The position numbers and the translations under genes were made by a program. Shown here piece by piece: positions 5,280-53,550 of a stretch of DNA of 64,000 nucleotides. The stretch is from contig NIVC01002616.1 of assembly GCA_002269645.1 (NCBI GenBank), positions 1 through 64,000 on the forward strand, written 5' to 3'. The DNA is from Macrostomum lignano. Lineage: Eukaryota. Every line of letters starts with the position of its first letter. The first letter of the stretch is position 1. Below the pieces are notes generated by a model. It did not search any database and had not been told where the DNA came from. It worked only from the letters and a program-made list of their open reading frames with translations.

Positions 5280-8168
5280 ATGGCCGAGGGCTTGTTCGAA
5301 AGCTTTGACGAAATCGAGTGCCACTCCAAGTGGCTGCCCGAGCTCAATTGCGACAGCCAAGAAGTTGACAAAATCCTCGAGGAGCTCCATTGGCAAAGCG
5401 ACAATTATCCTTGGCTGAAAGGTTTATGCTTGCTCGCCATCGCGCACCTGCACACTCTGCCAGGGTCATGTGACATCGAAAAGGCACGAGAGAAACTCGA
5501 ATCGATTAAGCCGTGTGAAGCAGTTTCAGGTGATCTGCCACAGCCGGATGTTAAATTTCTAGTTAAAGCAATGGAGCTCAAACTTCGAATAATGGAGTCA
5601 CAACCAAGTCTGCCATCCAAATACAAAGACCGGCTGGAGGAATTGTCAAACCTGTGGAAAGATAAGTCAGTTCAGGCCACTTGCTTTGTTGCCAAAGGCT
5701 GGACAATGCACTGGTTTGCTGTCGGCAATAATCGAGAGGATTCTTTCCAAATTTGTGCTTCGTCTTTGTTAAAAGCGAAATCAATTATTGAAGGCGTAAC
5801 TGGTGAAACTGAGAAGCTTAAAGTGGTTGAATTTATCTGCCTGTACAGTTTGGCGTTCGCCTTCTTCCGGAGACGAGAAAATCACCATCGACTGTGCAAT
5901 GATGAGTTTGTCTGCTGGGACAATGCGTACAAAATTTTGACAGACAAAGAGTGGCGGCATCCAATTTTCTTGCTGGAGTTCGCTAGGGCAGTCTCTTGTT
6001 CACCTGGTCACGTAGAGTTGTGCAAAAAACTGTTAGCGGAAGAGAAAAAAAATCGAGAACAACAGGAGAAGTATTATCAAACGTACATCATTTTGCCGGA
6101 TATATTTTCGTGGCTGAAGAAGACACGAAAAAATGAAACATTTTTGATCGAACTTGAAGAAGATATCAGCAGTTTGCTTGAAGAAGGAAGAAAAATCGAA
6201 AAACTACAACAACATAAAAAATTTTTGCGTCGAATAGTTGAGTTTCTAATCAGCTGCTCAAGACGAGAAGACGCCAGAGAGCTGTTGCAGAACACAAAGG
6301 AGGAGAGGAACACAGAGCTCTATAGGCCATCCAGCAAATACTGGTTCGAAATAACGCTGATCGCTTTAGAAATACCCAAAACAGCCAAGGGATGCCAGAA
6401 GCTACAGCCTAAAGAGATCGAATCCTTCCTATACCGACTAGAAAACCTGTGCACAAACGTTCCGTCAAAAGCAAGGCAAGTTCGACTGACAAAAGGCATT
6501 TTTTTAATAAAGTGCGGCTACATCGATGAGGGCATGAAGTGCTTAGCGTGGGCCATGAATGACTACCTGCATCCAGCACAAAGCTTCAAGCCGTTTTTGC
6601 CAAAAGAAATTACAGAAGCTAAAACGGTTTTAGAAGAAACAACGGACAAAAAAAAGTACCTGAATTGGGTTGAAAGTCAATTCGAAACTCATTCGGCATT
6701 TTATCACGTCGATGACTCGATACAAAAGTACCAGACTGAGCTGAATAGGCAGGATTTAACAGAAGATGAGACATTTTTCATTACCGAGCACCTCGGAAGG
6801 CTGCTGTTGAGGAAGTACAGGTTTGAAGAGGCGGAGCAAAAGTTCAGGTCTCTGCCTGAGGCTCTGGAGCACAAAAACGCAATGATTGCTGACTCCCTCT
6901 TGTGTCAGGCAGAGAGCTTGTCGAGCGGTGATGACGTCACAGAAGTATGCAAGGCCAAGCTACAGGAGTTTAAAGCACAGCCAGATAATGCAGTCCACAC
7001 AACCAGCATCGGGATGCGGCTGTACCTGCTGAACGAGTGTGCAAAGCTGGGCTGCAGAGACGCCATTCATGAGGCGCTGCTACTGCTGGAGGACATCCGG
7101 AAGCAGAGTCACAGAGATCACTTGTTGCAGCAAGCTCCAAACCATTTGTTCCTGCACAGCACTTGCGTCTACGTGTTCTGCTCTCGGCTGCTTCGGCTGA
7201 GAGAGCGGGGCTTCCAAATTGAGCGAAGAAAAAGTTTTGTAGACTCTGGCGGTGACCAGATGGGTGACATGCTGGACAAAGTAGAGCAAATCTTGGCCAC
7301 TGAGTTGTATCCCAGAAGAATTCGACTGAAAATGACACAGCTGAGCTTGAAGTATGAATCAGTAGAGGAAATGCTTCAGAGTCCCGAGGCTGAGCGCAGC
7401 ATTTGGCACACGCTGGAGGAGTCCCGAAAAGCACTCGATAGCTTCTGGGCTCAATTCGTCTCTAAAGTGGAGAAGCAGAAACATGGCTCCCAGTCTAAAG
7501 CGATATATTATCCATATTATCCATTTGCCCGCCGTGATTTGAAAAGCAGCAATGATAGTTTTTCAAACCTTTTCAAAAACAATTGGAGAGATCAAGCAAA
7601 ACTGTTTACTTCACTGTTGCAAACCATGAAAAGCACTGTTGAATGTCTCGACAAGGCTAATGAGAACGGAGTTGAAATTAATGCATGCGTGAAGGATCTG
7701 GAAGATATTGACGAAGCTAAGTTAAAAGATGAAGTGTCAGATGACCAGCTAAACGATTTCAAACAGCAGCTGGAGAAGCTCAAGCAATTTTTCAACCCTG
7801 CTACCACTGACCCAATTAAGTCAAATCAATTCGCAGGCTCAATCAAGAGGCTTAGAAATTCCAGTGAGAAATTTAACGAAATGCTACAGAAACCATTCCC
7901 ACTCGCGTTTCGAGCGAATGACGAAGTCTGTAAATGGATGATACGGAAGGAAGAGGCCATTGATTCTAACCACGGTTGTTGGCATGTACACTGGTGCGAC
8001 GAAGTCAACTCAGATAAGCACATTTATCCGGTTGATGTTGCCAAATTCAACGAAAAAATCAAAGAAAGATTTAATCAGAAGCAGAGTGGGCCAGTAGATG
8101 TTCTGGCTTTGGCTCATTACGCTGCGGAATTCGCTGAAGAGGCCAGGCTCGTTCTCGAAGAGTACACG
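5280..8168 (+). CDS. Exon 1 (963 codons): helical TPR-like region with C-terminal HEPN-like segment
   Basis: Uninterrupted 2.9 kb ORF (track ORF 5118-8183). First ATG is 5280. A strong GTAAGT donor at 8169 lies just before the ORF stop. Confidence 0.85.
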
Positions 8169-11100
8169 GTAAGTTTTTCTTAATTCTATGTTTTAAGAAT
8201 CAAAGTATCTGTTTTTTGATTAGACATTGTAAAATGGAGATCACCAAACAAAGATGATTCAAATGCTGTTTTTAAGCTCTTTTCGATAGTGTAGCAGGTG
8301 TAATTTTACTTATTTGTTCGATCTCGCAATTTCCACTAAATACCACCAAGTTGTAGCAGATTTATTTGTTCTGCCTAATTGAATCACTCCGTTTGTCAAC
8401 AAGTTACCAACGTATGACTCTTTTCTAGGAAATTTCCTGATTCACTAGATTTCTTTGGTAAGACACTGTTCTAAATTCATAAATTAAGCCCGAAATTACA
8501 GCGTTTCCGGGGACCAAGGGTGTCCGGCGGCGAGCCTTAATACCTAATATTTGTCTGTCTTCTAATGCCTAATAATTAACATCTAATCTTATGACCTTCT
8601 TAATACCCCTTGAGGCTGTACGGCTTTATCTCTACTGGGTCTGTTCGACCTCTATTGCCTGTGCGGCCTTTTTCCTACTTCTGGGTCTGTACGACCTTTA
8701 TTGCCTGTACGGTCGTTTCCCTACTTCTGGGATAAGAAATGAATAAGCAAAGATCATCTGTCAGCAGAAATTTCCTTTATCAAAAGAGGCAAGCTAGGAA
8801 CAAACTGGAGCTTGCTCAAGTTAGCTAGTTTTATTTTCATGCCAGGCGAAGCCTTTTTATAGTAAACAAAGGGGTGTCACGCCTCCCCTGAAGAGAGAAT
8901 TCGGTCGATACAATATGCCCTGAAAACTACTGATTTCCCATGAATCTATGACCCAGCAGAAGTCTAAAAAAGCAATCCTAGAAATCCTATCGCATTGTCT
9001 GCACAGTGTACAGGCATGCAATTAGGATTTTGACTTTAGTTTATATCGGTGTAGAATGAAACTAATCCATTCTGCCAGAGCCTCAGAAGTTGGCCTTCAT
9101 GGCTGAGAATGGCCTCAGGCCAATCGCACGGAATCGAACCAACTATACATGCATAAATTTTCGCAAGAGGCAGCTGCTCAGCCTCTCAATTGCACTCTTG
9201 GGCTTCATCAGTTGTTTATTATTAAAGTGCAGCCGAGCTCTGGCAGCCCATCTCAATTCTGTCCAGCTCTCGGCCTGCCCAGGACAGTGTGGGACTCACA
9301 TGTAGGCTGATTTTGGATTTCACACGGTTTATCTGTGCACTGCGGCTGCCTGGCTTTTTTATTGTATTTTGCACTTGGTGACCGGCAATTTAGCATTTCA
9401 CTGCTGAGATTTGTCAACTCGACAGCTCAGCTTCTCTACTCTCTATAAGATCCCAGCTCAGATCATGCAGAATCCGCTCAATAAACGCTTGTTTTCTCAT
9501 GCTTCAAGAAAGCGCTAAACTATCAAAAAAGTGCAGCTGGCTGTCAGCTCAGCCTCCGCCCGTCATCTCTGAGCACAGAAGCGAAGGTGCAGTGAGGGGG
9601 CAGGCAGGGTGCTCAAGCACAATGCAGAGTCTCCATTGTGCGAGGCTGGGGCTGCAACTCATTCGGGAGCAGCCGCCACTGCAGCCTCAGACAGCTCAGG
9701 TTTGCGCTGCTCATCTCGGCAGCCTCATCGCTAATTAAATCTATAACCTTCATCTGGAACGGCCCCACCCAGCTCAGCACTCGCAGTGCGACAGTCTGGC
9801 GTGATAAAAGGCGGCAAAGAGAAAACTGCTCGAGTTCGCAATCACCCCATACTGGCCTCTCGAACCACCCAACCCCCCGGCAACTCCTGCCTGCCTGAGA
9901 TAATAAACAAGTCTAGCTGGAATGCAGCTCCATCCAGCTCACTACTCAAAACAGAGACCGAGCTCTGCAGGGAGGCTGGCAGAGCGGTGCGCCGGCCTGA
10001 GAATAGCGAGCGAGCAGAGATAATTACTGCTTGAGGTTAAGCTGGCCTCTCTAAACACCCGCTCCCTACAGCTCAAGACTGCTTTTTGTCATAAATAAGG
10101 CATTGTTGCCATGCTTGAATCTCAGAATTTGATGGCTCTCAGGCCATTCAGTGCGGCTCAAGCCTGTCTGTTGCTGCTGGCTGCAGGTGGCAGGAATGCG
10201 AAATGCAGTGAGCTGCTGCGGCCGAGAGCTGGACAGAGTTGAGATGGGCTGCCGGAGCTCGGCTGCACTTTAATAATAAACAACTGATGAAGCCCGAGAC
10301 TGCAATTGAGGGGCTGAGCAGCTGCCTCTTGCGAAAATTTATGCATGTATAGTTGGTTCGATTCCGTGCGATTGGCCTGAGGCCATTCTCAGCCATGAAG
10401 GCCAACTTCTGAGGCTCTGGCAGAATGGATTAGTTTCATTCTACACCGATATAAACTAAAGTCACTGTACTAATTGCATGCCTGTACACTGTGCAGACAA
10501 TGCGATAGGATTTCTAGGATTGCTTTTTTAGACTTCTGCTGGGTCATAGATTCATGGGAAATCAGTAGTTTTCAGGGCATATTGTATCGACCGAATTCTC
10601 TCTTCAGGGGAGGCGTGGTGTGGGGTGCATCGTAATTGGCGGGGACAACTTAAAACAAAATTAGATGAAAATTTTATCAGAAATAGGATTTACAACAAAT
10701 AATACCGTATTAAAACAAAAAATTTATTTTTGGTTGCTAAATTAGCAACCATTGCGATTTTTGGTCGCATGTAGCTACTTATAGTAATGAAATGGGGATT
10801 GGCAGACCCCACTTTAATAGCGAAAGGTAGACGTGTGAAATACTTTGCTAAGCTATGATATCAGCATAAATTTAAATTCACCTAGAAGCTCGGCTGGAAA
10901 TAAAAAATACGGATTCTATTCAACTTTTTCTATTCTCAAACACTGTTTTCAAGCTCTTATAGATTAATTTGAGAACCGAAAGTAGTGGGTTAAAATTTGC
11001 ATACATTTAATTTACCGACTGATTTATAAGACTCGGTTTACAACCAATATACCCTTGTATCATAAAACTAAATTCGATTTGCAGTACCCAGAGGTAACCA

Positions 11101-14100
11101 TTCCAACGAAGCCAGACGCCATCGGTGAAAACTTCGAGTGGAGCCTTGTCTGCTACTCGTGTGCTCAGCCGAACGACGTCTTGCGCAGCAGATGGAGCCG
11201 CTTGCAGAATGAATGTGCAAACTGTGACAAGTGCATTCTGCTGGTCAGAGAGAAGGCCAGTGCGGCACCAAGTGACGTTTGGCAGCGTGTCCGACCCAGA
11301 CCAAGGAAACTCGTCAAGCTGGACATGTGCAGGAGATACAGCGATATAGAATCCTGCAACGGCTGCAAGCGTTCTGAATGCGACTTTGCCCATGGAGACG
11401 CGGAGCTGCGGCTGTGGGAGCTGGAGAGAATCGGCAAGTTCTCCTTCAACAAGCTGCTGGAGTCCAAACGATCAGCTGGGTCAGAACTGCCGCTGATTCT
11501 CTGCGAGCGACCTGCGGTCGAAGGAGGCTCGGAGCTCCAGATTGTCTACACGGGTCCGGAGTCGCTTCCCGCCAGACTCCCTACTGGGAAAGCACAAAAT
11601 TCCTGCTATTCGCTCTGCAACTCGCTACTTGAAGGAACTGAGTGCCAGCATCAAGGCATATGCTTCAGTGCTCACTGTGCTGAGGAGGAGCAGCTGTGGA
11701 ACATCATGCAACAGAAAAGAGGTAGAATCGAGATGCTTACATAATCCTAATCTTTACGTTATAGCTCGTAATATTGAATAACATAGAGTTAAGGCTCGTG
11801 TTACAATTCATTAACTCTTTCAGATAATTGGCCCGAACATCTGGTTTTAAGAATCGACAAAATCGAGCCCGAACTCATTGGCTGGAGCCTCGAATCGAGC
11901 TGCGACTACAAGCTGACCTGCTACAGGTGCTCCGAATCACTGGATCCTCTGAGAAGCAGATTCAAGCTGAAGGAAACACAGAACTGTGAGCGGTGCGACC
12001 AGAGCATCCTGCTGGTCAGATCGAAGAACAATCAAATCAACAAGTGGCAACGCATCCGAGACAGACAAGGACATCTGGTCATATGTGATCTCTACCAATC
12101 AAACAAATGCAGGCGCTCCGAATGTGACTTCGCTCATGGCGATATGGAACTGAAGCTGTGGAAGCTGGAGAGAATCGGCAAGTTGTCCTTCGACAAGCTA
12201 CTGAAGTCCAAACTGCCGCTGATTCTCTGCGAGCGGCCTGCGGTCGAAGGAGGCTCGGAGACCCGAATTTTCTACACGGGTCCGGAGCCGCTTCCCGCCA
12301 GACTCCCTGCGAAACAACAAAGATTCTACTATCCGCTCTGCGAATCGCTTTTTGATGGAACTGAGTGTCAACATTATAATCGAGGCATATGCTTCAGTGC
12401 ACACTGTGCTGAGGAGGAGCAGCTGTGGAACATCATGCAACAGAAAAGAGGTAAAACCAAGAAGCTTCATCTACATGTAAATGTACGAGTATGTGGGATG
12501 AAATTCAAGTGTGTTAAGTATAATATTACAATAACAAAGTTAACGCTCGTATTGCAATTCATTAACCTGTTTAGATAGTTGGCCCGAACATCTGGCTTCA
12601 AGAATAGATAAAATCGAGCCCGAACTCATTGGCTGGAGCCTCGAATCGAGCTGCGACTACAAGCTGACCTGCTACAGGTGCTCCGAATCACTGGATCCTC
12701 TGAGAAGCAGATTCAAGCTGAAGGAAACACAGAACTGTGAGCGGTGCGACCAGAGCATCCTGCTGGTCAGATCGAAGAACAATCAAATCAACGAGTGGCA
12801 GCACATCCGAGACAGACAAGGACATCTGGTCATATGTGATCTCTACCAATCAAACAAATGCAGGCGCTCCGAATGTGACTTCGCTCATGGCGATATGGAA
12901 CTGAAGCTGTGGAAGCTGGAGAGAATCGGCAAGTTGTCCTTCGACAAGCTACTGAAGTCCAAACTGCCGCTGATTCTCTGCGAGCGGCCTGCGGTCGAAG
13001 GAGGCTCGGAGACCCGAATTTTCTACACGGGTCCGGAGCCGCTTCCCGCCAGACTCCCTGCGAAACAACAAAGATTCTACTATCCGCTCTGCGAATCGCT
13101 TTTTGATGGAACTGAGTGTCAACATTATAATCGAGGCATATGCTTCAGTGCACACTGTGCTGAGGAGGAGCAGCTGTGGAACATCATGCAACAGAAAAGA
13201 GGTAAAACCAAGAGGCTTCATCTACATGTAAATGTACGAGTATGTGGGATGAAATTCAAGTGTGTTAAGTATAATATTACAATAACAAAGTTAACGCTCG
13301 TATTGCAATTCATTAACCTGTTTAGATAGTTGGCCCGAACATCTGGCTTCAAGAATAGATAAAATCGAGCCCGAACTCATTGGCTGGAGCCTCGAATCGA
13401 GCTGCGACTACAAGCTGACCTGCTACAGGTGCTCCGAATCACTGGATCCTCTGAGAAGCAGATTCAAGCTGAAGGAAACACAGAACTGTGAGCGGTGCGA
13501 CCAGAGCATCCTGCTGGTCAGATCGAAGAACAATCAAATCAACGAGTGGCAGCACATCCGAGACAGACAAGGACATCTGGTCATATGTGATCTCTACCAA
13601 TCAAACAAATGCAGGCGCTCCGAATGTAACTTCGCTCATTGCGATGTGGAACTGAAGCTGTGGAAGCTGGAGAGAATCGGCAAGTTCTCCTTCAACAAGC
13701 CGCTGGAGGTAAAAAGCAAAATCTAGATTCTTTTAGGGTACATTTTACCTTTGCCATTCTTTTTCCAAGATTTCGAACCCTGGCTTGGATTTATGATTTT
13801 ACTATCACTGTGCACAAGGCTGCTGTAGCAGTTTTAATTTGAGTTTTTCAATCATTCTGTTGAATAGCCTGAGTCGATATTAAGAATTGTATGCTGCAAA
13901 GTGTATTCTTAGTTACCAGAGATATACTGTGTGGCGACTAAATCATGTTACCGTTCTCATTCTAATCGAGAAACACATTTTTGTGGCCTCATTACCCACA
14001 TTTACAACACAGTATTGCCTCTTACCAGTGGCTCGTATCCAACACGCTCAATTAAATTTAGAGAAGTGTCCTCAGGAGCTGCGAGCACTGATCGACCGAA

Positions 14101-19307: not shown

Positions 19308-19848
19308 TTAAATACATTTCTGTAGTCTATGGCCAGGCCCAAGTGGGGAATAAATACATTTCTGTAGTCTATGGCCAGGCCCAAGTAGGGAATAAATACA
19401 TTTCTGTAGTCTATGGCCAGGCCCAAGTAGGGAATAAATACATTTCTGTAGTCTATGGCGAGGCCTAAGTGGGGAATAAATACATTTCTGTAGTCTATGG
19501 CGAGGCCTAAGTGGGGAATAAATACATTTCTGTAGTCTATGGCCAGGCCCAAGTGGGGAGTAAATACATTTCTGTAGTCTATGGCCAAGTAGGGAATAAA
19601 TACATTTCTGTAGTCTATGGCCAGGCCCAAGTAGGGAATAAATACATTTCTGTAGTCTATGGCGAGGCCTAAGTGGGGAATAAATACATTTCTGTAGTCT
19701 ATGGCGAGGCCTAAGTGGGGAATAAATACATTTCTGTAGTCTATGGCCAGGCCCAAGTGGGGAGTAAATACATTTCTGTAGTCTATGGCCAAGTGGGGAA
19801 TAAATACATTTCTGTAGTCTATGGCCAGGCCCAAGTGGAGAATAAATA
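19308..19848. repeat. 42-bp minisatellite (some 36-bp units), ~13 copies
   Basis: Unit aataaatacatttctgtagtctatggccaggcccaagtgggg. Confidence 0.95.
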
Positions 19849-20461
19849 TAAATATTATTCTCCACATTCTAGTAGACTAGTTTTGTAAGCTACTAAGAAA
19901 ACTATAATTGCATATGAAAAAGTAAATTTTTGTTTAACTTAACGGCTCAAACAGTTGATAATAAAGAATATATAAATTGATTATAGCATATTAGAATGGC
20001 TGACGAACTTATAGACTGCGACGACTATGACTGACTAGCCATAGGAAAAAGTAACGCAAAAACGGCTAGATTTTTTGTTTTCAAAAACTAAGAAAAAGCA
20101 AATGGTTTATGAGACAGCTGTGATTTAATTAAAAACGCACACACAGCAACAAATTTATGATGCACACACATGGTAACTAAGCAAGCTGAAGAGGAACACA
20201 ACAAAAGACACAAAAAGCAAACGAAAAGCAAGGCATAATTACAATACGCAGTTCAATTGTTATTATTATATATATTAGTAAACAGTTCTTATAAAACAAA
20301 GATGTTGTAGCAACTTCAATCAACTCCCATATTGCAACAATTTCAATCACAGGACAATATTATTATTATTATTATTATTCTTAAAGGGATTAATTCTGAT
20401 ATAATAACAAACACTAAGCTTGAAACGATGGAAGTGCAAGATACGAGCTGTTCCCAGTCAC

Positions 20462-23400
20462 TCAAATATCGCTCTCGTGATGCTTATTGCCCTTCTTCCT
20501 ATTGTCTATGGTTGACATGCTGAAATCGTTCACATTGTCGTCAAGAATTTTGTCCTCCTTGCTGAAGCCCGTCTGCTGGTAGATGATGTCATTTAGTAGC
20601 TAAAATGAAAAACAATGCGGCAATAAAACCAAGGTCAGTCTCTTCAGTTGATGACACTTGCAGATGAAGAAAATAGAAATGATTGTTTTGTTCCGTAGAG
20701 TCTATGGCCAGAGCTCTCCTTTCTAGCTTTGATCTGCTGTCTATGGCCAGAACTCTCCTTTCTAGCTTTGATCTGCTGTCTATGGCCAGAGCTCTCCTTT
20801 CTAGCTTTGATCTGCTGTCTATGGCCAGAACTCTCCTTTCTAGCTTTGATCTGCTGTCTATGGCCAGAGCTCTCCTTTCTAGCTTTGATCTGCTGTCTAT
20901 GGCCAGAACTCTCCTTTCTAGCTTTGATCGGCTGTCTATGGCCAGAGCTCTCCTTTCTAGCTTTGATCTGCTGTCTATGGCCAGAACTCTCCTTTCTAGC
21001 TTTGATCGGCTGTCTATGGCCAGAGCTCCCCTTTCTAGCTTTGATCTGCTGTCTATGGCCAGAACTTTCATTTCTAGCTTTGATCGGCTGTCTATGGCCA
21101 GAACTTTCATTTCTAGCTTTGATCTGCTGTCTATGGCCAGAACTTTCATTTCTAGCTTTGATATGCTATCTAATGGTCACGACTTTCATTTCCAGCTTTG
21201 ATCTGCTGTCTATGGCCAGAACGTTTATTTCTAGCTTTGATCTGCTGTCTATGGTCAGAACTTTCATTTCTAGCTTTGATCTGCTGTCTATGTCCAGAAC
21301 TTTCATTTCTAGCTTTGATCTGCTGTCTATGGCCAGAACTTTCATTTCCAGCTTTGAACTGCTGTCTATGGCCAGAACTTTCATTTCCAGCTTTGAACTG
21401 CTGTCTATGGCCAGAACTTTCATTTCTAGCTTTGATATGCTATCTAATGGTCACGACTTTCATTTCCAGCTTTGATCTGCTGTCTATGGCCAGAAAGTTT
21501 ATTTCTAGCTTTGATCTGCTGTCTATGGTCAGAACTTTCATTTCTAGCTTTGATCTGCTGTCTATGTCCAGAACTTTCATTTCTAGCTTTGATCTGCTGT
21601 CTATGGCCAGAACTTTCATTTCTAGCTTCGATATGCTGTCTATGGCCAGAACAGACGGATTTGACGCTTAATCTTAGAATTTGATAGCAACAAACAGATA
21701 GTAGGCTGACGAGGCTGTTAAAAAATGACTATAAAAAGCGAGTGACCAATCAAATCTAGATAATAAAAAGCTATCAATACTACTTACATCGTCATCTTCG
21801 CCCTCCTCGGATACGATTAGATTGCGTCTAGCGGCAGCTTTCGACTCGGTCTTGCGCACTGATGGCATTGGAGCTCCATTTAGCTGGTGGAGGTTGTCGA
21901 TTTGGTGGCATTGATTAAATAAGCTTGGATCTATTAATAGTAGCACTTTCTATATGTCAGTATCTTTCGATCCATCTCACCCCTGTATCTCAGAGTCTAA
22001 TCTCACCCCCTGTATCTCAGAGTCTATATCTCACCCCTGTGTCTCAGAGTCTACATCTCACCCCTGTGTCTCAGAGTCTATATCTCACCCCTGTGTCTCA
22101 GAGTCTATATCTCACCCCTGTGTCTCAGAGTCTATATCTCACCCCTGTGTCTCAGAGTCTATATCTCACCCCTGTGTCTCAGAGTCTATATCTCACCCCT
22201 GTGTCTCAGAGTCTATATCTCACCCCTGTGTCTCAGAGTCTATATCTCACCCCTGTGTCTCAGAGTCTATATCTCACCCCTGTGTCTCAGAGTCTATATC
22301 TCACCCCTGTGTCTCAGAGTCTATATCTCACCCCTGTTTCTCAGAGTCTATATCTCACCCCTGTTTCTCAGAGTCTATATCTCACCCCTGTGTCTCAGAG
22401 TCTATATCTCACCCCTGTGTCTCAGAGTCTATATCTCACCCCTGTGTCTCAGAGTCTATATCTCACCCCTGTGTCTCAGAGTCTATATCTCACCCCTGTG
22501 TCTCAGAGTCTATATCTCACCCCTGTGTCTCAGAGTCTATATCTCACCCCTGTGTCTCAGAGTCTATATCTCACCCCTGTGTCTCAGAGTCTATATCTCA
22601 CCCCTGTTTCTCAGAGTCTATATCTCACCCCTGTGTCTCAGAGTCTATATCTCACCCCTGTGTCTCAGAGTCTATATCTCACCCCTGTTTCTCAGAGTCT
22701 ATATCTCACCCCTGTGTCTCTGAGTCTATATCTCACCCCTGTGTCTCAGAGTCTATATCTCACCCCTGTGTCTCAGAGTCTATATCTCACCCCTGTGTCT
22801 CAGAGTCTATATCTCACCCCTGTTTCTCAGAGTCTATATCTCACCCCTGTTTCTCAGAGTCTATATCTCACCCCTGTGTCTCAGAGTCTATATCTCACCC
22901 CTGTTTCTCAGAGTCTATATCTCACCCCTGTGTCTCTGAGTCTATATCTCACCCCTGTTTCTCAGAGTCTATATCTCACCCCTGTGTCTCAGAGTCTATA
23001 TCTCACCCCTGTGTCTCAGAGTCTATATCTCACCCCTGTTTCTCAGAGTCTATATCTCACCCCTGTGTCTCAGAGTCTATATCTCACCCCTGTGTCTCAG
23101 AGTCTATATCTCACCCCTGTTTCTCAGAGTCTATATCTCACCCCTGTGTCTCAGAGTCTATATCTCACCCCTGTGTCTCAGAGTCTATATCTCACCCCTG
23201 TGTCTCAGAGTCTATATCTCACCCCTGTGTCTCAGAGTCTATATCTCACCCCTGTGTCTCAGAGTCTATATCTCACCCCTGTGTCTCAGAGTCTATATCT
23301 CACCCCTGTTTCTCAGAGTCTATATCTCACCCCTGTGTCTCAGAGTCTATATCTCACCCCTGTGTCTCAGAGTCTATATCTCACCCCTGTTTCTCAGAGT

Positions 23401-26400
23401 CTATATCTCACCCCTGTGTCTCAGAGTCTATATCTCACCCCTGTGTCTCAGAGTCTATATCTCACCCCTGTGTCTCAGAGTCTATATCTCACCCCTGTTT
23501 CTCAGAGTCTATATCTCACCCCTGTGTCTCAGAGTCTATATCTCACCCCTGTGTCTCAGAGTCTATATCTCACCCCTGTGTCTCAGAGTCTATATCTCAC
23601 CCCTGTGTCTCAGAGTCTATATCTCACCCCTGTGTCTCAGAGTCTATATCTCACCCCTGTTTCTCAGAGTCTATATCTCACCCCTGTGTCTCAGAGTCTA
23701 TATCTCACCCCTGTGTCTCAGAGTCTATATCTCACCCCTGTGTCTCAGAGTCTATATCTCACCCCTGTGTCTCAGAGTCTATATCTCACCCCTGTGTCTC
23801 AGAGTCTATATCTCACCCCTGTGTCTCAGAGTCTACATCTCACCCCTGTGTCTCAGAGTCTATATCTCACCCCTGTGTCTCAGAGTCTATATCTCACCCC
23901 TGTGTCTCAGAGTCTATATCTCACCCCTGTGTCTCAGAGTCTATATCTCACCCCTGTTTCTCAGAGTCTATATCTCACCCCTGTTTCTCAGAGTCTATAT
24001 CTCACCCCTGTGTCTCAGAGTTTATATCTGACCCTGAGTCTCCCAGTATCTCAGGGGTCTCCCTGTATCATTCCCCCCTCAACCCCCATGGCCCAGTCCT
24101 GCATCGCTCACAGATTTCTCTCGCCGCTCAGTCCCGGCAGCGCCAGCGGGCTCAATCTCGTCACTTGGATGCTCATCATAGCATGGCGGTCCGTGCGATC
24201 CGTGAGTCTCCACCACTTTGCTAGTGACAACCTGGCGCACCTGTTTCCGCTTGACAATCCGTTTAGTGACCTTGTTGCCATGCTCATCCGTGTAGGTTTC
24301 CACCTCTTCGACTGGGTCGCCGACTTGTTCGCTCTGTTAAATACAAATTCAGAAAGATGAAAGTCTGTGACTACTAGCAGTAGGGAAAATGCTAAATATG
24401 TTTAAAAAAAACGGAAAAGCTACTAACATTAATCAAATGATAGAACAGAACTACAGATCGACATATAGGTACAAAATTAATATAAACATGCTATACGAAT
24501 ACTTACATATAAATAATAAAAGAAAATATAAACAGAGCCATGCACAAAAAACTGCAAAAACGCAAGAAATCGCTTAAGAATCATTTTATAATCGATAAAA
24601 ACGGCAGACGACCACACAGGAAGGTTGTAAGCCAGGGATCGGCAAACTCCGGCTCTCGGTCCTTCGATCAACTTCGCAATAGCAATTCAGTCAGCTTAAG
24701 GTTTGTGTCTCTTTTCGCCTCCTTCTCTTTTCTCTTTTCTTATAATATGAGATATTCGACATATCGGCACTTTGCTTAACACATCTCTGCATTACTGCAT
24801 CATTTTCTCTCCTCCCTCTGTCTTTTCTCCTCTTTCCCTTCTCCCCTATCTCCTCTCTTCTCCTTCCTCTCTCCCGTCTTTTCTCTTTTCCTTCTGTCTT
24901 CTCTCCTCTCTCCTTTTTCTCCCCTTTCCTCTCTCCCCTCTTCTCTCCTCCCCCTGTCTTCTCTCCTCTCTTCTTTTTCCTCTCTCCCTTCTCCTCTCCT
25001 CCCCCTGTCTTCTCTCCTCTCTTCTTTTTCCTCTCTCCCTTCTCCTCTCCTCCCCCCTGTCTTCTCTCCTCTCTTCTTTTTCCTCTCTCCCTTCTCCTCT
25101 CCTCCCCCTGTCTTCTCTCCTCTCTCCCTTTTTCTCCCCTTTCCTCTCTCCCCTCTTCTCTCCTCCCCCTGTCTTCTCTCCTCTCTTCTTTTTCCTCTCT
25201 CCCTTCTCCTCTCCTCCCCCTGTCTTCTCTCCTCTCTTCTTTTTCCTCTCTCCCTTCTCCTCTCCTCTCCCTGTCTTCTCTCCTCTCTTCTTTTTCCTCT
25301 CTCCCTTCTCCTCTCCTCCCCCCTGTCTTCTCTCCTCTCTTCTTTTTCCTCTCTCCCCTCTCCTCTCCTCCCCCCTGTCTTCTCTCCTCTCTTCTTTTTC
25401 CTCTCTCTCCATTCCTCTCCTCCCCCTGTCTTCTCTCCTCTCTTCTTTTTCCTCTCTCCCCTCTCCTCTCCTCCCCCTGTCTTCTCTCCTCTCTTCTTTT
25501 TCCTCTCTCCCCTCTCCTCTCCCCCCTGTCTTCTCTCCTCTCTTCTTTTTCCTCTCTCCCCTCTCCTCTCCTCCCCCTGTCTTCTCTCCTCTCTTCTTTT
25601 TCCTCTCTCTCCCCTCTCCTCTCCTCCCCCTGTCTTCTCTCCTCTCTTCTTTTTCCTCTCTCCCCTCTCCTTTCGCTTCTCCCTCCCCTATTATCTCCTC
25701 ACATCCTCCATCTTTTCTCTCATCCTACCTGCGTATCGCTTCTGCCCACCCCTCTCTCCTCTTATCTACTATTCCCTCTCCTTATCAGTCTAATCTGGCC
25801 CGCGGCCATGAGCTGGATTCTTTACTATCTAGCCATTGGCTTAAGGTAAAAAAGTTTGCAGACCCACTTGCTATAAACAATGATACGTGCATCAAGCAAG
25901 GTAAACTACAGGAGGGTAATAGAGGTACAATTAGTAGGCTAGGAAGCTAATAAACCGGCTCTAATCCAGATACGCAAGCAGCTAGCAAAGGATTACTTGA
26001 GTGACAAAGGTTCGCTCTTTCGGATCGCCCTGGAAATGATGATGATGCTTCGGATAGCCCTGATGCTCGCAGCCTCCTCCGTCGCCTGCGGCACCGGCCT
26101 CGGCCATCTCCATCATGGCCATGGACTTGGAGATATTGTCATCGGAGTAGTCCGCAGGCTTTTATTGGAAAAAAATAAGTACGCATTGAACTTTTCAAGT
26201 GATAAAATTTTATTAGGGGACATTTGAAGGTCACGGATACAAACAAGACAATGTACTGTTGATCAGACAGTCGCTATAAACTCTCTCACCTCCGTTCGGT
26301 GCTCGTGAACGGCAGTTCCACCACCGCCGCCATTGTAGCCGCCGTGCAATTGGCCGGCGTGAATCTGCTGCTTGTTCTCACGGATGACGTCATATTTGTG

Positions 26401-29400
26401 ATCAACAGACGGCAGGTTGGAGTTCTGCGTTGCGTGATTGGTTGAGAATATTTTAGAGACAAGTGAAGCGAAGAATTTCAACAATTATATATTGCAGTTA
26501 CAGCTTATCACCACCCAGCTTACCCTCTTTGTGAGGCTTTCCTGAAGCATTCTAGGATCAACGTAGGTAAATCCTTTGGACTTGCGCTGCAATGCAATTT
26601 GTGACGGGTGATGATTAGGGATCTGTGTAGATTGCTTAGGGATCTGTGCAGATTGCTTAGGGATCTGTGTAGATTGCTTAGGGATCTGTGTAGATTGCTT
26701 AGGGATCTGTGTAGATTGCTTAGGGATCTGTGTAGATTGCTTAGGGATCTGTGCAGATTGCTTAGGGATCTGAGTAGATTGCTTAGGGATCTGTGTAGAT
26801 TGCTTAGGGATCTGTGTAGATTGCTTAGGGATCTGTGTAGATTGCTTTGGGATCTGTGTAGATTGCTTAGGGATCTGTGTAGATTGCTAAGGGATCTGAG
26901 TAGATTGCTTAGGGATCTGTGTAGATTGCTTAGGGATCTGTGTAGATTGCTTTGGGATCTGTGTAGATTGCTTTGGGATCTGTGTAGATTTCTTAGTGAT
27001 CTGTGTAGGGGACCACTAAAAAGGGATCTGTGGGGATCACTAATAAGGGATCTGTGGGGATCACTAAAAAGGGATCTGTGGGGATCACTAACAAGGGATC
27101 TGTGGGGATCACTAAAAAGGGATCTGTGGGGATCACTAAAAAGGGATCTGTGGGGATCACTAACAAGGGATCTGTGGGGATCACTAATAAGGGATCTGTG
27201 GGGACCACAAAAAAGGGATCTGTGGGGATCACTAACAAGGGATCTGTGGGGATCACTAATAAGGGATCTGTGGGGACCACAAAAAAGGGATCTGTGGGGA
27301 TCACTAATAAGGGATCTGTGGGGATCACTAAAAAGGGATCTGTGGGGACCACTAAAAAGGGATCTGTGGGGATCACTAAAAAGGGATCTGTGGGGATCAC
27401 TAATAAGGGATCTGTGGGGATCACTAATAAGGGATCTGTGGGGATCACTAACAAGGGATCTGTGGGGATCACTAATAAGGGATCTGTGGGGACCACTAAC
27501 AAGGGATCTGTGGGGACCACTAAAAAGGGATCTGTGGGGATCTTAAAAGATCTGATGGGGATTTTTATGATCCCAACCAGTTTTTTAGGATTGACTTCAA
27601 TTTTGAAGGGATTTTTGGGAACTATTATAGATAGGAATAATTTCAAGATTTAGGGCTAAGTTTAAAGAATGATACACAATAGAAATCAGCACTCACGTCC
27701 ATAACTCCGGTCTTTCCGCTTCGCCGTACGGAATCCTCGCTAGCCAGACACACTGGAGTCCACTCGTCGCCAGGAGGATATTTGAAGGGCGTCTGGCCGA
27801 GATTGACAAACAGAGTCTGGTCCCGCATGCTCACTGTGGGATAGAATGCCTCCTGGCTGAGCACTTGGCTGGGCAGCTGGTAGGCGGGGCCCATCAGGGC
27901 GCTGTTGCGAGCGAACTGCATCTGGCCGTGGTCCAGATCTAAGAAGCAGCCAACAACGTCGCCTTTGCCAAACGGTTCGCCATAGCTGTCAATCTCGTCT
28001 GAGTGCATCTTTTTGCCTTGATTGCCGGCCAGCCCGAAGCCGTCGGGATCGGCGCCGTAGCCCCAGCCGGCGGCGTCTCGGCCGATGTCCAGGCCGCCCG
28101 ACTCGGTGGTCCAGCCGGCTCTGGACAGGCCGCGGGCCTCTGCGGCTCCACCTCGTAGTAGAACCGGCCGCCAGCCCGACCGCGGAGACCTTTGTTGGCG
28201 CGGACGCCCTGGTTGGTGTTGACGGTTGGATGACTGATTTATGCTTGATTGATGACTGGTTGATGACGATTGACAAGAGGTTGATGATGGTTGATGATGG
28301 CTGATGATGATTGATGATGATTGTTGATGGTCAATGATGATTGATGATAGCTAATGGTGTTTGGTGATGATTGATGACGGTTGATAATAGATTTACAGTG
28401 AGAGCTGATAGATAACTGATTGCTAGTTGACTATAGATGCCGGCTGATGCAAATGCACAACAGTTGCAACTCCCGCGCCCACCTGCCAGCCGAAGCCCAG
28501 CTGACTCTGCGCAGAGGCACCGTCGGGTCCCAGCGTCAGTCCGGGGCCGCTGGTGTCGTGCTGATTCAGCCGCCAGGCGCGCGGATTCTCGGCCTGTTGA
28601 TTGGCCGGCGCCAAACCGACGGGCCGCCAGACGCCGGCCGGCCGGTACAGCAGCGGCCTGGCCGGATCGTCGCCGAAGTTCCAGTGGGCGGCGGCGCCGG
28701 GGGCGAGGCAGGCGGCCGGGTAGAACACCTCACGGCGCATGTCGTGCGGCAATTCGTAGGCGAGGCCCAACTCTTTGCCATTGACTGAGTACAGCACAGA
28801 GCCGCCGTCTAAGTCGACGAAAACTCCGACAACGTCGCCGCTGGCTAGACGATCGCCGTAGGCCTCGGCGACGCCGCGGTTGTACTTTTCGCCGTTGGCC
28901 CCGTAGCCGAAACCGTGGGCGTCGTCGCCTAGGCGCAGACTGGCGGAGCTGGTCGACCAGCCAACTCTGGCTGGCACAGGCTGATCGCCGGCAGGTGTTG
29001 CCATGGTAACCGTGGCTTCGTAGTACCACTGGCCGCCGTTGCAAACTCCGCGATCGGTACGGCAGCCCTGGGATAGGAATGCGTCATTGTTGATAAATGC
29101 AGTTTTTAATACCATTGACTCTATCAAATTAAAGTACACGTGTGACTAAAGTACAAATGTGCCAGTTCTAGAGTACAGATGTATTAGTTTAAATAGTTTT
29201 TTATTACAGGGTCGCCACACACACCCTCAATTACCCTAGCTAAAACCTGATACCCATTTTGCAGCTGGGTGAACTGAAGCAATGCAGAGTTACGAGTAAG
29301 TGTCTTGCTTAAGGACACGAGTTGTTCCAAGTAGGTTGATAATCGAATCCCCGACTTTTCAGTGGTAAGCCCGACACTAAACTACTAGGCTGAAATCCCT

Positions 29401-32400
29401 CAAAACACACACTAGTACACATGTACTAGTTCAAAAAGTACACATGTACTAGTTCAAAAAGTACACATGCACTAGTTCAAAAAGTACACATGTACTAGTT
29501 CAAAAAGTACACATGCACTAATTCAAAAAGTACACATGTACTTGTTCAAAAAGTACACATGTACTAGTTCAAAAAGTACACATGTACTAGTTCAAAAAGT
29601 ACACATGTACTAGTTCAAAAAGTACACATGTACTAGCTCAAAAAGCACATTTAAATAGTGCACACAGCAGAGCTTATAGCTGATGGAAAATTAAAGCAGC
29701 TCACCTGCCAATCAGGCGCCCCGACGGGACAGGCGCCAACTGATCGGCCAGAGTCCAGACTGGCTGACAGCATTGGCTCAGCGTCGGCCGGAGACATGTG
29801 CCAACGGGACGGCCGTTCAACCACCAGCTCAGGTCGACGGTCCATCTGATCGCGTTGCTGCTGCTGCTGCATTTGCATCTGTTGCTGGCGCCACAAGGTG
29901 ACGTCGCTAATAGTGCCGTCCCCGGCGCCGCCGTAGATGTTGCCGCGAGATCCGTTGGCAGCGGCGGCTCGCAGCTCGCGATTGTAGGCGTCCTCTGAGG
30001 AATTTGAATTCAATGTTACAAGGATTTGCAATTTGGAATGAAATTGAAGCCTGCAGCATTGAGACTTAATTTTGAAGGATTTTATACCTGAGAAGGGTTT
30101 TGGATTAGGGATTTGGGGAGGATTATGGATAAGAAAATTATGGAGTTGAATAGGATTAGGGACTTGAGGAGGATTAGGGATTTGAGAACTAGGGATTTTA
30201 AAAGGATTGGGGATTTAAAGACTACGGATTTAAATAGGATTAGGGATTTGAGGAAGATTAGGGATTTGAGGACGACTAGGGATTTGAATAGGATTAAGGA
30301 TTTGAGGAGGAGGATTAGGGATTTAAAGACTACGGATTTGAATAGGATTAGGGATCTGGGGAGGACTAGGGATTTAAAAAGGATTACGGATTCGAAGATA
30401 ATTAGAGATTTGAAGTCAACTACAGAATTATACTGAAGTATAAGGACAGTCAGAGAAATTGAGATTCAATACCAAGGATTTTGAATTTGAAGGATTTTGG
30501 ATTTGAAGGGGCTCAGGGTTCGGGATTCTTAACTGGGATTCGAATTGCATAATATTTGAATCACACCTTTCTGTCTGAAGCTCTTGCGCATATCGCTAGT
30601 AACGGGCATCTCCTGATAGTTGCCGTAGGTCTGATCGTTGAGCTGGTCGCGAGTCGGCCCAGTGTAATTCCATTTGTTCTTGAATGTGCCAGGAATCAGC
30701 GGCTTGGACGGCTTCTCCGGCGATTTGAGTCTGCGCGGGTTGAGCCATAGTAACGGATTAGGCGAGCTTTAGATTGTGCAGAGATGAATACGGTAGGGAA
30801 TTAACAATGACTATAGGGAGAGGCCGATGGGACGGCTCAGAGGGAAATAACAGCTTGGATAATCCAGGCATTAATCCAGTAGATATTATTGATTATCTAA
30901 GGGTTAATCCAGTAGGGATTATCGATAAAGGATTATTGATTATTGAAGAATTAACCAGTAGAGATTATCTATAATCCAAGATTATTGATTATCTAAGGAT
31001 TAATCCGGTAGAGATTATCGATAATCCAACGATTATTGATTATTGAAGGATTAATCCAGTAGAGATTATCTATAATCCAAGGATTATTGCTAGTCTAAGG
31101 ATTAATCCAGTAAAGATTATTGATAATCCGGAAGCGAACGTCAATAATCCAAGGATTAACTAAGCAAGGATTAGCCATAATCCAGGGATAAGCACTTCGG
31201 GGATGAAAAAAAGTCTTGAACTTCAAGCAAAGCAAAGCGTTAAACCAAAGCTCTCAAAGTTATTCCTCACCGGAAGAAGCCGTGATGCTCAACCACAGCC
31301 CGCCACAACCGCTTGGCCAGCTTAGCCGAGGCGCACTTGAACTCAACCACAGTCTCAGCTTTCGAGTCGCGCTCCGACTCAGTCCTGATGCCAATCTTGA
31401 GCGTATTCCGCTTATAGGACACTTTGAGAATCTTTGGCCAAGAGTAGCGACCAATCCGCAGGCTGTTGCGGTACACCAGCACGCCCGAATGATACACGCC
31501 AACAAAGACCTCCTCGCCCATGCTGTCCTTGGCCTCGTGCATGTCCAATCCGTACATAGCCAGCTTCTTGGCATTCTGCAAGAAATGCATATCGGCCTCC
31601 TCTGGCGTCATGCCCTGGTGAGTTTTGTGCAACTCGCTGACTCGTTCCATGAGTTCGCGATGACTGCGGAATTCCTCCGGACAGAATGGACAGTCCTGCA
31701 GGTACAGCAGGCTGGTCATCTTCTCGTCGCTTGGCTCGAAATCGCCGATCTCGGATTGGACAACGTAGCTGCCCAAGATGATGTAGGTGATGAAGGAGCA
31801 GGGCAAGGCGTCGGCCATGAGATTCTGGCGAATCTGGAGAGCCATGTAGTAGCGGGTGAGATTCTCGCGGAGATTCTCCGGATCGGGCGGATAGAACTTC
31901 ACCATGAAGTCCAGCTTCCATTCGTTCTCTGCGGATTTTTAGGGGGGGGGTGGGTGTCGAGCTGCCTGTTTTGCTGCGGTTAATTAAAGTGCTCTTTGTA
32001 CTCTAATTTCCCTTTTCTACATCAGAAGCGTCCAGAGTGACAGTGGCGTGACAATCACGTGACGGTATCGTGGCAATCACGTGACGGTATCGTGACAATC
32101 ACGTGACAGTATCGTGGCAATCACGTGACAGTATCGTGGCAATCACGTGACGGTATTGTGACAATCACGTGACGGTATTGTGACAATCACGTGACAGTGT
32201 CGTGACAATCACGTGACAGTGTCGTCGTAATCACGTGACAGTATCGTGACAATTATGTGACAGTATCGTGACAATCACGTGACAATATCGTGACAATCAC
32301 GTGACAGTATCGTGACAATCACGTGACAGTATCGTGACAATCACGTGACAGTATTGTGACAAAAAACACGTGATGGGAGTCAGGATACAAGCTATTTTTA

Positions 32401-35400
32401 CACAATCACTTGACAGACACAAACAACCTGGAAAATTGTATTTTATAGGAAATACGGTACTCTAAGATAACGAAAAATATGTTGATAATGCCATAACTAT
32501 TGATAGAACGGATTTCCAGGCACGCCAAGGAAACTCTCAATAGTAAATACCAAGCAACAATACTGAGATAAAAGTACAGCGCTAGGTTCTATAGTATTAG
32601 CGGGCAGGCAGACAGACAGACAGATCCCAGACAGGGAGATCGGGGAGAAATGTACAGAGCAGAGAAGAGGGATAGAAAAGATCAATGTGGGTTTGGTGGC
32701 TCAGCGCGCATCGCATCTGACAGTCCACTCACACTGCTCAAACTTCTTATATAAAAATGTGAGCAATAGGAAATACTGTTAGTACGTATGCATCATAATC
32801 ATTTTTTCTAAAATCTAAATCCCTAAGGGAGATTCCGCTAGGCGCAGAATTGAACCCACCTACCCGACTAAGCCTTCTACTTAAACTGAGTGTTCCCCCA
32901 AAAATGGCAGCCTTAAAAATATCCCTCTTGCATCTGGGGGAGTGAGGGAAACAGAAGGGCTGGGGGATGGGAGGGGAGACGCGTTAAGGCAGCTCTCTGA
33001 CTCAGCCAGTGGTGGTTGAGATGTGCAGAGAAACGTAGAATGCTGTCGATGATTGTGCAGGCAAACCCAATTCATCTCCTCATCTGACTGTCCCGACAGA
33101 CTCCGATAATGCCTTAAACATAGCAATAGTGATCCTCAAGTGTGACCATGATGTGACCGTCAATTTGACTTGCGAAAGATGAAAATACTGTCATTGTGAC
33201 CCTTGTGTGTTATTCCAGTCACATTTGACGGTCACATTTGAGGGCCACATGAGCGACCATTTGTTTGGCGGTCACATTTGAGGGCCACATGAGTGACCAT
33301 TTGTTTGACGGTCACATTTGAGGGCCACATGAGTGACCATTTGTTTGACGGTCACATCGCAGGGTCACATGAGTGACCATTTGTTTGACGGTCACATTTG
33401 AGGGCCACATGAGTGACCATTTGTTTGACGGTCACATCGCAGGGTCACATGAGTGACCATTTGTTTGACGGTCACATTTGAGGGCCACATGAGTGACCAT
33501 TTGTTTGACGGTCACATCGCAGGGTCACATGAGTGACCATTTGTTTGACGGTCACATTTGAGGGCCACATGAGTGACCATTTGTTTGACGGTCACATTTG
33601 AGGGCCACATGAGTGACCATTTGTTTGACGGTCACATAAGCGACCGTTAATTTGACGGTTACATCCAAGCGTCACAATAGAGGGTCACATGCAATTTGCT
33701 TTGTTTTAACTGTCATCAAAACGGTCACATAGTCAAAATGTGACCGGTCCCAGTTTTATACAGGACAGAAAGCCGAAAACAGTGAAAGCGAAAGTCGAAA
33801 TGAGGTCGAATGGGAAGATGCAAAAGCCCCCCTTCCCCTAATTCCTATAGAACGCCAGACGGGCCTGTTAAGATCTCTTAACAACCCCCTCTAGTTGATG
33901 GCTACCAGAGTCGGGCAGGCAGACAGGCAGGCCGCATGTGTCAGGGTGTGTGTGTGTGGAGTGGAGCCGATTGGAGAGGAGGGTAGGGTAAGGGTGTAGA
34001 AAATAGCTGCACATATTGTGAAGGGGAGAGAAAAGGGAGTATACATACATACATATATATCCCTTATAATATATAAGCCATAGTCCGCCCAGCAGAACCT
34101 ACAGACTGGCTACAAGATCTGCTGACTGCCAATGCACAAAACATTCCTTTTAACAAATTGCAACAAATGCTTTTTCTAGTCTGCAGTAGTATATTCTAAC
34201 CACAACTGTATTCATCATATATATATAAGCCATATATATCGTACAGTAAAAATAGATTTACACATCTTAGTATAGGCGATGAATAGATACTAACACGGGT
34301 CTAACCTTTGCTAAAAAAGATATATTTACTTCCTAAAATTAGCATCTAGTCAGCAGACTCCATGCGTACATTATATAGATTACTAAAACAAAAATTAACG
34401 AACTAGCTCAGCTTTCAGGACTGCTGTGATTTATTATTAGAGACAGAGATCTATGTGCATCTATGGCGCAATTTAAGCGACATTGTCAATACAACCAGTA
34501 AGAGGCAGTAATTCCACGGACTCCCCTGAGCAGGCACACACTCACACAGTGGTGTACAGCGGCTGTAACTTTATTTATCGTTAGGCATGTACACTTGCCT
34601 TAGAGGGTTGGCTCTTAAAGGCGCAAATAAACAAATAAACAAACAGCAAACACTTACTGCCAATCTGCTTGCCAAGTTTCTTCTCGCCGTTAAGCCAGTA
34701 CTGTAATAAAAATAATAAATATACAATAGAATTAATTTTGACACACACTTTTAAAATCATAAAAAAGCCAACAAGTTCAACATCTTACAGTACAATAAGT
34801 GAAGCAATCGGATTTGAGAGTTGTAGTTGCACTATCAAAGAGCATGACCTCAAGGCTTAGAGGGGTATAGAGAGAGAGAGATGCTTTTACAGGCATGCAA
34901 TAAATCACCAGATCGGACACAGATGCAGAGAGAAAACTAGCGGACCAAATGCCAAGGTCAAACACATGGCAATCGAGAAGAGGAAAGAGTAGAGGGGAGA
35001 GGCAGAAAGAGCACAGTCGCATTATTATTCGGTCTGTTTGATTCCCTCCACATTAGCGATAAGTCAGTTCACAGTGAGGAGATATGCTGATATGCATCAA
35101 TTTTATTTGACAATACTTACAAATATATTGTTTGAGTCGCGATAGCACAAGCCGAAGTACTCTTTCTCGTGCAGGCCCAGCGTGATGCAGGTCTCATCGA
35201 ATAATTCTTGAGCCTTGGCGTTGGTCTGAAATTGGATTAATAGTAATATAGTGCTCAATGGCTCACTGTTTAGGGACCTGAGTTGGGGCTCAGGATCTCA
35301 CTGAGGGACACCTGAGTTGGGGCTCAGGATCTCACTGAGGGACACCTGAGTTGGGGTTCAGGATCTTACTGAGGGACACCTGAGTTGGGGCTCAGGATCT

Positions 35401-46410: not shown

Positions 46411-46884
46411 TCGGCTAGCGACATGGATTTAACCAAAAAAAAACAAGCAAAACCATATTTAGCCCTGTAACAGTATATGCATATACATTGTAATGGCCGT
46501 TTGTCGAACTAGTTCTGCTATTTAGGTAGCTCATACCTTCAAAAGAGTAGTCTCAGATCGGTCAACACAAAACATTGAAAGTACTTTAGTAAAGACCTAG
46601 CAGAGCTACAGAAAAGGCCTTGACAATGTGTTAGTTAAACTTGAGATTCCATCAGACGCGTACCTAATAGATGAGATCAGAGGAAACTCCCTATCCGCCA
46701 ACTGCTTCAAGCCGATCTCTCGGATTTTGACAACAACATATCGTTGATACATGTACATGTAAGTGCAGGTTGCTTCGAATTGTTTGCACGCACAAAATTT
46801 ATTTAGAAAGGGGTCGCAACTCTAAAAGGAGCTTGTATTTGATGTCGTTAGATCCCAATCTTCCTGTCGATCTTTGTGGGCGTT

Positions 46885-53133: not shown

Positions 53134-53202
<69 letters not shown>

Positions 53203-53516: not shown

Positions 53517-53550
<34 letters not shown>

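Follow-up and report, generated by a model that had tools for sequence, protein, structure and literature searches.

A predicted IFIT-like tetratricopeptide repeat family with a conserved helical region and CCCH zinc-finger modules in the flatworm Macrostomum lignano

IFIT proteins have a central place in antiviral defence as sensors of RNA ends, and a gene of the flatworm Macrostomum lignano raises the question of whether an invertebrate carries proteins of a similar kind and what they might do there. The gene, annotated in GenBank as BOX15_Mlig020891g1, lies on the forward strand of contig NIVC01002616.1 (assembly GCA_002269645.1), of which we analyzed positions 1 to 64,000, the 64,000-nucleotide (nt) stretch referred to here as the window. 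Over its initial 20,091 bases the window matches the beginning of this contig in Mlig_3_7 without a difference. A first reading of this DNA, made from the letters alone (the original prediction), proposed that the gene encodes an RNA sensor-effector that combines an IFIT-like tetratricopeptide repeat (TPR) region, a HEPN-like nuclease domain and seven CCCH zinc fingers in one protein. We find that the locus is a single transcribed six-exon gene of M. lignano, that its TPR region belongs to a family with a distant relationship to IFITs, and that the presumed nuclease domain is a conserved helical region in which HEPN identity is not supported.

The family was built from an exhaustive phmmer search of the 963-residue product of exon 1 against 1.84 billion cluster representatives, since word-indexed searches returned either the protein's own cluster or one paralogue. 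This search matched 17 representatives, all of which were M. lignano paralogues (Mlig030191, Mlig006963, Mlig019237, Mlig011244/000529 and a second CCCH subfamily) or unnamed proteins on eukaryotic contigs of the European Nucleotide Archive (ENA) sets ERZ25074608 and ERZ26859043. The paralogues of M. lignano fall into at least six divergent groups with 23-55% identity between groups, and identity to the ENA-contig members is 25-30%. Three regions are common to the members, namely an N-terminal start of the form L-x-x-L-E-C-H-F-[TKN]-W-x-P-E, a helical middle and a C-terminal domain of about 110 residues, while the tails that follow vary: RGG-type repeats in P0006 and P0009, CCCH modules in the window gene and in its closer relatives, and no tail in others. 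The family is small, fast-diverging and multi-copy, with one N-terminal and helical core joined to different tails. The narrow distribution, the copy number and the divergence are what a defence-type family would show, and they would fit lineage-specific RNA regulation equally well.

The ENA-contig relatives are found on contigs of 40-750 kb, and the three that we looked up (L001, L002 and L003) are each encoded by one uninterrupted open reading frame (ORF). The contigs of these three are 50-750 kb long and have a high coverage of 84-110x. In L002 the ORF of 610 residues is followed 20 nt on by another of 239 residues, which may complete the same gene. Two pairs of family members share a contig (P0007 with P0015, and P0016 with P0017). 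An entry from the older M. lignano assembly, P0022 (UniRef A0A1I8JIK7, 4203 residues, named 'AMP deaminase'), clusters with paralogue P0006 at 90% identity and probably results from the fusion of neighbouring genes into a chimeric gene model.

The relationship to IFITs is seen at the N-terminus of the family, where motif, profiles and predicted fold point to it independently of one another. Paralogues P0006 (LEELECHFTW) and P0026 (LDQLECHFTW) contain an exact ECHFTW, the ENA-contig relatives have ECHF[KN]W at the equivalent position, and IFIT5 reads LLELECHFTW, with ECHFTW at residues 17-22, which is the same distance from the N-terminus as in the two paralogues. The IFIT5 reference sequence is 100% identical to 3zgq_A. 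A profile hidden Markov model of the N-termini of nine relatives (profile A3), run against 177,635 distinct PDB sequences, gave IFIT5 as its top match (E 0.0019), with a collinear alignment of positions 7-165 to residues 13-169, and also listed the N-terminal fragment of IFIT1 (E 0.58). Comparison of the family N-terminus with IFITs by hhalign gave a probability of 95%, an E-value of 2.4e-8 and a score of 65.8, which rose to 74 without the window sequence; the controls, IFIT alignments of which 15 had their columns shuffled and one was reversed, all scored 20 or less. After removal of the motif the score was 30 (E 0.007) and collinearity was kept. In addition, paralogue P0006 passed the Pfam threshold for TPR_2. 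We also modelled the fold of residues 1-560 with AlphaFold2, without templates and from ten family sequences from which IFITs were excluded (mean predicted local distance difference test score, pLDDT, 76.9). The best match of this model in a Foldseek search of the PDB was IFIT5 (4hot_A, E 1.6e-4), and of the eight best matches six were to IFIT5 or IFIT1, with template modelling (TM) scores of 0.38-0.48, the highest seen, whereas other TPR proteins (APC/C subunits, Ctr9, Ski3 and IFT-A) scored 0.2-0.36.

Beyond exon 1 the protein carries 2.5 to 3.5 tandem zinc modules of about 210 residues each. The first half of a module comprises a CxxC...CxxC unit, an ILLVR...W.R.R segment and a CCCH finger followed by FAHG.xEL.LW, and the second half consists of a conserved linker, LPLILCERP...Y.GPE.LPARLP, and a second CCCH finger followed by AHCAEEEQLWNI. 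A pattern scan of the model that includes all exons found seven C-x7-8-C-x5-7-C-x3-H fingers and four CxxC-x17-19-CxxC units. The seven fingers of the original prediction therefore hold for this all-exon model, since that count includes exon 4, which is 98.8% identical to its neighbour, and the annotated isoform has five. The fingers have the C-x6-10-C-x4-8-C-x3-H spacing with an aromatic residue ahead of the final Cys-x3-His, their Cys and His residues are invariant in five modules taken from three paralogues, and UniProt labels the relatives 'C3H1-type domain-containing protein'. Among solved structures the closest finger is that of ZC3H7A (2d9m), with an E-value of 0.023 for a single module and 0.013 for a profile, followed by fingers of the TTP family. 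The ZC3H7-type label that the fingers had been given is thus weakly supported, as the match is marginal and concerns one finger.

With regard to function, RNA binding is inferred and a part in defence is a possibility; the most likely role, in which we have moderate confidence, is that of a protein that binds RNA without acting on it as an enzyme. In this model single-stranded RNA would be held by the CCCH fingers and the IFIT-like clamp would bind either RNA or a partner protein, so that target RNAs could be sequestered or marked, or further factors recruited, in the fashion of IFITs and with no cleavage by the protein itself; the conserved helical domain could serve in the recruitment of partners. 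Because the paralogues repeatedly gain RNA-binding tails of the RGG type, RNA is likely to be their common ligand, and because there is no nuclease signature, sequestration, marking or recruitment in the manner of IFITs would be the most economical mechanism.

A number of observations weigh against this interpretation. Taken alone, the window protein gave no Pfam TPR match, its exon 1 product gave an empty phmmer result against the PDB, and it had no significant similarity to IFITs, its motif being degenerate (ECHSKW). The profile signal comes mostly from the short N-terminal motif, identity between the family and IFITs is about 20%, and since all IFIT TM-scores are below 0.5 the similarity in fold is moderate. 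With regard to the residues that we take to form the 5′-end pocket of IFIT5 (E33, T37, Q41, K150, Y156, R186, Y250, R253, Y254, R260, H287, Q288, K415 and K426; residue types checked), K150 aligns to C, H or W in the family, in an alignment that is reliable only to about residue 170, and Y156 is retained in some paralogues only; an extended hhalign alignment (mact 0.01) was likewise unreliable for pocket residues past about residue 170. The Pfam zf-CCCH families were matched at sub-threshold level only (zf-CCCH_3 at 14.7 bits; zf-CCCH in paralogue P0002 at 17.7 bits, where the cut-off is 20.5). The helical region has polar residues that do not vary (R, R, D, E, N, K, H, H, E and E) and that could mark an unrecognised active, catalytic or ligand-binding site. 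Finally, literature full texts and supplements, searched for Mlig020891 and its paralogues, yielded neither expression nor functional data. A full-length family profile (A2) matched the generic TPR protein LapB alone in the PDB, the IFIT signal being seen with the N-terminal profile only, and no Pfam family passed the threshold in exon 1 or the finger exons. The IFIT-like N-terminus of the original prediction is accordingly supported, by sequence profiles and a predicted fold, as a property of the family and not of the window sequence alone, and the L-x-C-H-F-T-W feature appears present at family level and degenerate in the window gene. We interpret the TPR region as distantly homologous to IFITs themselves or to a shared IFIT-like ancestor, and do not claim strict membership of the vertebrate IFIT family.

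The alternative that survives best is that the protein is an ordinary post-transcriptional regulator with TPR and CCCH domains that works like ZC3H7/RoXaN, for instance in the control of germline or stem-cell mRNAs, and that its resemblance to IFITs has no functional meaning. CCCH proteins are commonly regulators of mRNA, the TPR region could be a scaffold for protein-protein contact, TPR plus CCCH is the ZC3H7 layout and ZC3H7A provides the best solved finger match, and the RNA-pocket residues of IFITs are not visibly conserved. However, none of the 17 matches of the 963-residue region was a ZC3H7-type protein. The gene is therefore no orthologue of ZC3H7, and the plain ZC3H7 orthology that the original prediction had named as its possible undoing was not found. 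Furthermore, a lineage-specific family in fast evolution would account for the narrow distribution, the many divergent paralogues and the swapped tails better than a housekeeping regulator under conservation would, and IFIT5 and IFIT1 outrank every other TPR protein both by sequence profile and by fold. We therefore regard an ordinary regulator as a possible but doubtful explanation.

A non-enzymatic RNA-binding protein also has to be weighed against the proposal that the C-terminal part of exon 1 encodes an intrinsic ribonuclease of the HEPN type, to which the IFIT-like sensor and the CCCH fingers would be coupled. The region meant by the HEPN-like label is presumably that of residues 845-963, a conserved four-helix unit whose motifs are R-K-E-E (REH in relatives), W..W, N-x-x-K-H and AH.AAEFAE. 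In an alignment of this C-terminal domain of about 110 residues (A4), E, W, W, N, K, H and E are invariant and AH.AAEFAE is near-invariant, and residues 561-844 likewise contain invariant and near-invariant columns (alignment A5). The conserved polar residues include N-x-x-K-H, in which the spacing from N to H may recall that of N and H in R-N-x-x-x-H, a motif of KEN/HEPN nucleases. On the other hand, the position before N-x-x-K-H, where that motif has arginine, is V, I, D or H in every member and never R, each of the three strings of exon 1 that fit Rx4-6H has an unconserved H column (alignment A2), and the REH motif is changed to KEE or REE in the subfamily of the window gene itself. When 13 members were scanned against Pfam at E≤10, no HEPN family came up, and a PDB profile search with the C-terminal domain gave two chance-level matches only. 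The AlphaFold2 model of residues 561-963 is all-helical (mean pLDDT 66, with conserved blocks at 85-93), and Foldseek found no significant match for it, the best being generic helical proteins at E 3.1 in the PDB and 0.053 among the viral models of BFVD. These results indicate that residues 561-963 form a conserved and, by prediction, all-helical region of about 400 residues with no recognised fold, in which HEPN is not supported by any test run. The nuclease-like domain of the original prediction is thus not supported, and with it the coupling of RNA recognition to RNA cleavage loses its basis; we consider a HEPN effector very unlikely.

The organization of the gene bears on whether these parts belong to one protein. 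The original prediction joined the 2.9-kb ORF in frame from the donor at 8169 to an acceptor at 11085, and this was confirmed: the GTAAGT donor and the acceptor (...tttgcag/TAC) are phase 0 GT-AG sites, every further exon through exon 5 also has GT/AG borders, and the GenBank model agrees. Since that model comes from the Mlig_3_7 annotation, which was derived from a genome-guided RNA sequencing (RNA-seq) transcriptome assembled with StringTie/TACO and de novo assembly (PMC5730564), the 8168/11085 junction has transcript-level support. The same junction (...LEEYT/YPE...) recurs in the models of other paralogous loci, among them P0030 (87% identity) and P0003/P0029 (about 45-48%). Translation of the exons joined through 13708 gave a stop-free open frame of 1721 residues. 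The GenBank product, PAA56471.1 (1521 residues, span and coding sequence 5280-14091), is exactly identical to our model after two edits, the removal of exon 4 and the addition of a sixth exon. The gene had been predicted to end at 13708; its coding sequence instead runs on to 14091 through this terminal exon, in favour of which a read-through to a stop at 13724-13726 was dropped. The predicted length of more than 1700 residues applies to the full six-exon model (1730 residues), and the annotated isoform falls short of it. That a TPR gene and a neighbouring zinc-finger gene have been wrongly joined across a transposon-bearing gap of 2.9 kb is a scarcely credible alternative, prompted by the length of intron 1, its inverted-repeat element of 398 nt and the finger-less single ORFs of the ENA-contig relatives, but opposed by the phase-compatible consensus GTAAGT/YAG sites, the RNA-seq-guided model and the recurrence of the junction in models of paralogous loci. 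The positions of all of these features are collected in the table.

Table. Features of the Mlig020891 gene in the window; domain assignments are predictions.
Feature	Position	Strand	Details
Exon 1	5280..8168	+	ATG 5280, 963 codons, donor GTAAGT at 8169; equals PAA56471.1 residues 1-963
Putative IFIT-like TPR superhelix	5280..6959	+	Residues 1-560; family profile, hhalign, AlphaFold2/Foldseek
Motif E13-C-H-S-K-W18	5316-5333	+	4/6 positions of ECHFTW
Middle conserved helical region (predicted)	6960..7811	+	Residues 561-844; motifs L.EC..LGC.D, LFF..Y..CA, R..RL, L.LD, YP.A
C-terminal conserved domain of exon 1 (predicted)	7812..8168	+	Residues 845-963, four helices
Intron 1	8169..11084	+	2916 nt, GT...AG
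Exon 2	11085..11721	+	Zinc module 1; in PAA56471.1
Module 1 (exon 2)	CxxC..CxxC 11151-11234; CCCH 11328-11393, 11616-11675	+	Pattern scan
Exon 3	11824..12450	+	Zinc module 2; in PAA56471.1
Module 2 (exon 3)	C4 unit 11919-11996; CCCH 12084-12137, 12339-12404	+	Pattern scan
Exon 4	12575..13201	+	Zinc module 3; skipped by GenBank model
Module 3 (exon 4)	C4 unit 12670-12747; CCCH 12835-12888, 13090-13155	+	Pattern scan
Exon 5	13326..13708	+	Partial zinc module 4, donor GTAAAA at 13709; in PAA56471.1
Module 4, partial (exon 5)	C4 unit 13421-13498; CCCH (NFAHC variant) 13586-13639	+	Pattern scan
Exon 6	14062..14091	+	RSVLRSCEH + TGA; matches PAA56471.1 C-terminus

The unit formed by exon 4 and its intron duplicates exon 3 and its intron in tandem, over 751 bp and with 98.8% identity. 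About 2.5 copies of this exon-plus-intron unit lie within 11824-13708, the identity between copies 1 and 2 extending to the introns. Either the duplication is very recent or the region is prone to collapse in genome or transcript assembly. The omission of exon 4 from the annotation may accordingly reflect true exon skipping, with a protein of 1521 residues and five fingers, or collapse of a short-read assembly, with 1730 residues and seven fingers.

Intron 1 contains an inverted repeat with arms of 398 nt (8878-9275 and 10220-10617) that are 98% complementary and spaced 944 nt apart. There is no long ORF between the arms, and the element resembles a transposon of the foldback or the non-autonomous terminal-inverted-repeat kind. 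A 46-nt direct repeat is also present in this intron, at 8632-8723.

The remainder of the window is eukaryotic in character, with minisatellites and spliced genes. Minisatellites are unusually dense at 19309-27542, 29414-30415, 32037-33637, 35949-38177, 46871-47258, 53134-53666 and 61977-62562, and give rise to many spurious long ORFs; they include arrays of 77 copies of a 27-bp unit (21974-24042), 24 copies of a 39-bp unit (20700-21652) and 44 copies of a 23-bp unit (35949-36975), as well as a CT-rich array with strong strand skew (24805-25681). On the minus strand, exon-sized ORFs of unrelated genes are located at 28423-29139 and 31267-31905, and the domains found in these ORFs are SPRY (E 1.6e-20) and FERM_M plus FERM_C (E 7e-22 and 1.7e-20). 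An N-terminal exon resembling CLCA (calcium-activated chloride channel regulator) is present on the plus strand in two near-identical tandem copies (49482-50108 and 55105-55722), the second of which is followed by a VWA exon (55914-56354). These copies, about 5.6 kb apart, are a local gene duplication.

The sequence of the gene is not itself new, since GenBank and UniProt hold its model under the names hypothetical or 'C3H1-type domain-containing protein'; as a gene model the protein is thus not undescribed, although we found no paper on the gene or its paralogues. Our searches of the literature for invertebrate IFIT homologues likewise returned nothing but IFITM or unrelated matches. What is new is that a flatworm has an IFIT-like family, that a new conserved domain is fused to it and that its RNA-binding tails are swappable. 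Going further, M. lignano and at least one other eukaryote might carry expanded true IFIT homologues fused to a new, possibly catalytic helical domain and to interchangeable RNA-binding tails, which together would form an undescribed invertebrate system of RNA surveillance or antiviral defence; we offer this as a tentative proposal that we do not expect to be borne out in full. To our knowledge there is no interferon system in the host flatworm. An evolutionary survey placed the origin of IFITs in jawed vertebrates, together with interferon (PMC3688568). If the flatworm proteins were true IFIT homologues, IFIT-type TPR clamps would predate both jawed vertebrates and the interferon system, and a flatworm family bearing the N-terminal signature of IFITs together with an IFIT-like fold would either push the origin of the IFIT module much deeper or reveal a sister family. 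Furthermore, the fusions to a new domain, to CCCH modules and to RGG tails would offer a testable case of how RNA-recognition modules recombine in invertebrate immunity or RNA control. Such tests are feasible because M. lignano is transgenic and tractable by RNA interference (PMC5730564).

Compared with known systems, the family shares with the HEPN ribonucleases (among others the KEN domains of RNase L and Ire1, Cas13 and Csm6) a small all-helical domain, whereas the flatworm domain lacks both a conserved arginine and an Rx4-6H motif and matches them neither in sequence nor in fold. With ZC3H7A and ZC3H7B (RoXaN) it has in common a TPR region at the N-terminus with CCCH fingers after it and, for ZC3H7A, the finger signature C..FAHG.AEL..WE, although this likeness to 2d9m is marginal and confined to one finger. 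In contrast to these proteins, the 963-residue N-terminal part has no detectable similarity to ZC3H7-type proteins, and the fingers are arranged in repeated modules of about 210 residues that each contain an additional CxxC..CxxC unit. From the IFITs it differs first in its host, since IFITs have been reported from jawed vertebrates only (PMC3688568), and further in that the residues of the IFIT5 5′-end pocket are not visibly kept. IFITs are stand-alone proteins of about 470-490 residues, whereas the flatworm protein has 1521-1730 residues and adds a helical region of about 400 residues and zinc modules; an IFIT gene has two exons, the first consisting of the ATG and 2 nt (PMC3688568), whereas the flatworm coding sequence begins inside a large exon. 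The flatworm family resembles IFIT1, IFIT2, IFIT3 and IFIT5 in several respects: the N-terminal motif L-x-x-L-E-C-H-F-T-W of the paralogues, a collinear match across the first 160 or so residues, a predicted all-TPR superhelix whose nearest solved folds are IFIT5 and IFIT1, intron-free coding of the TPR region, and membership of a multi-copy, quickly diverging family.

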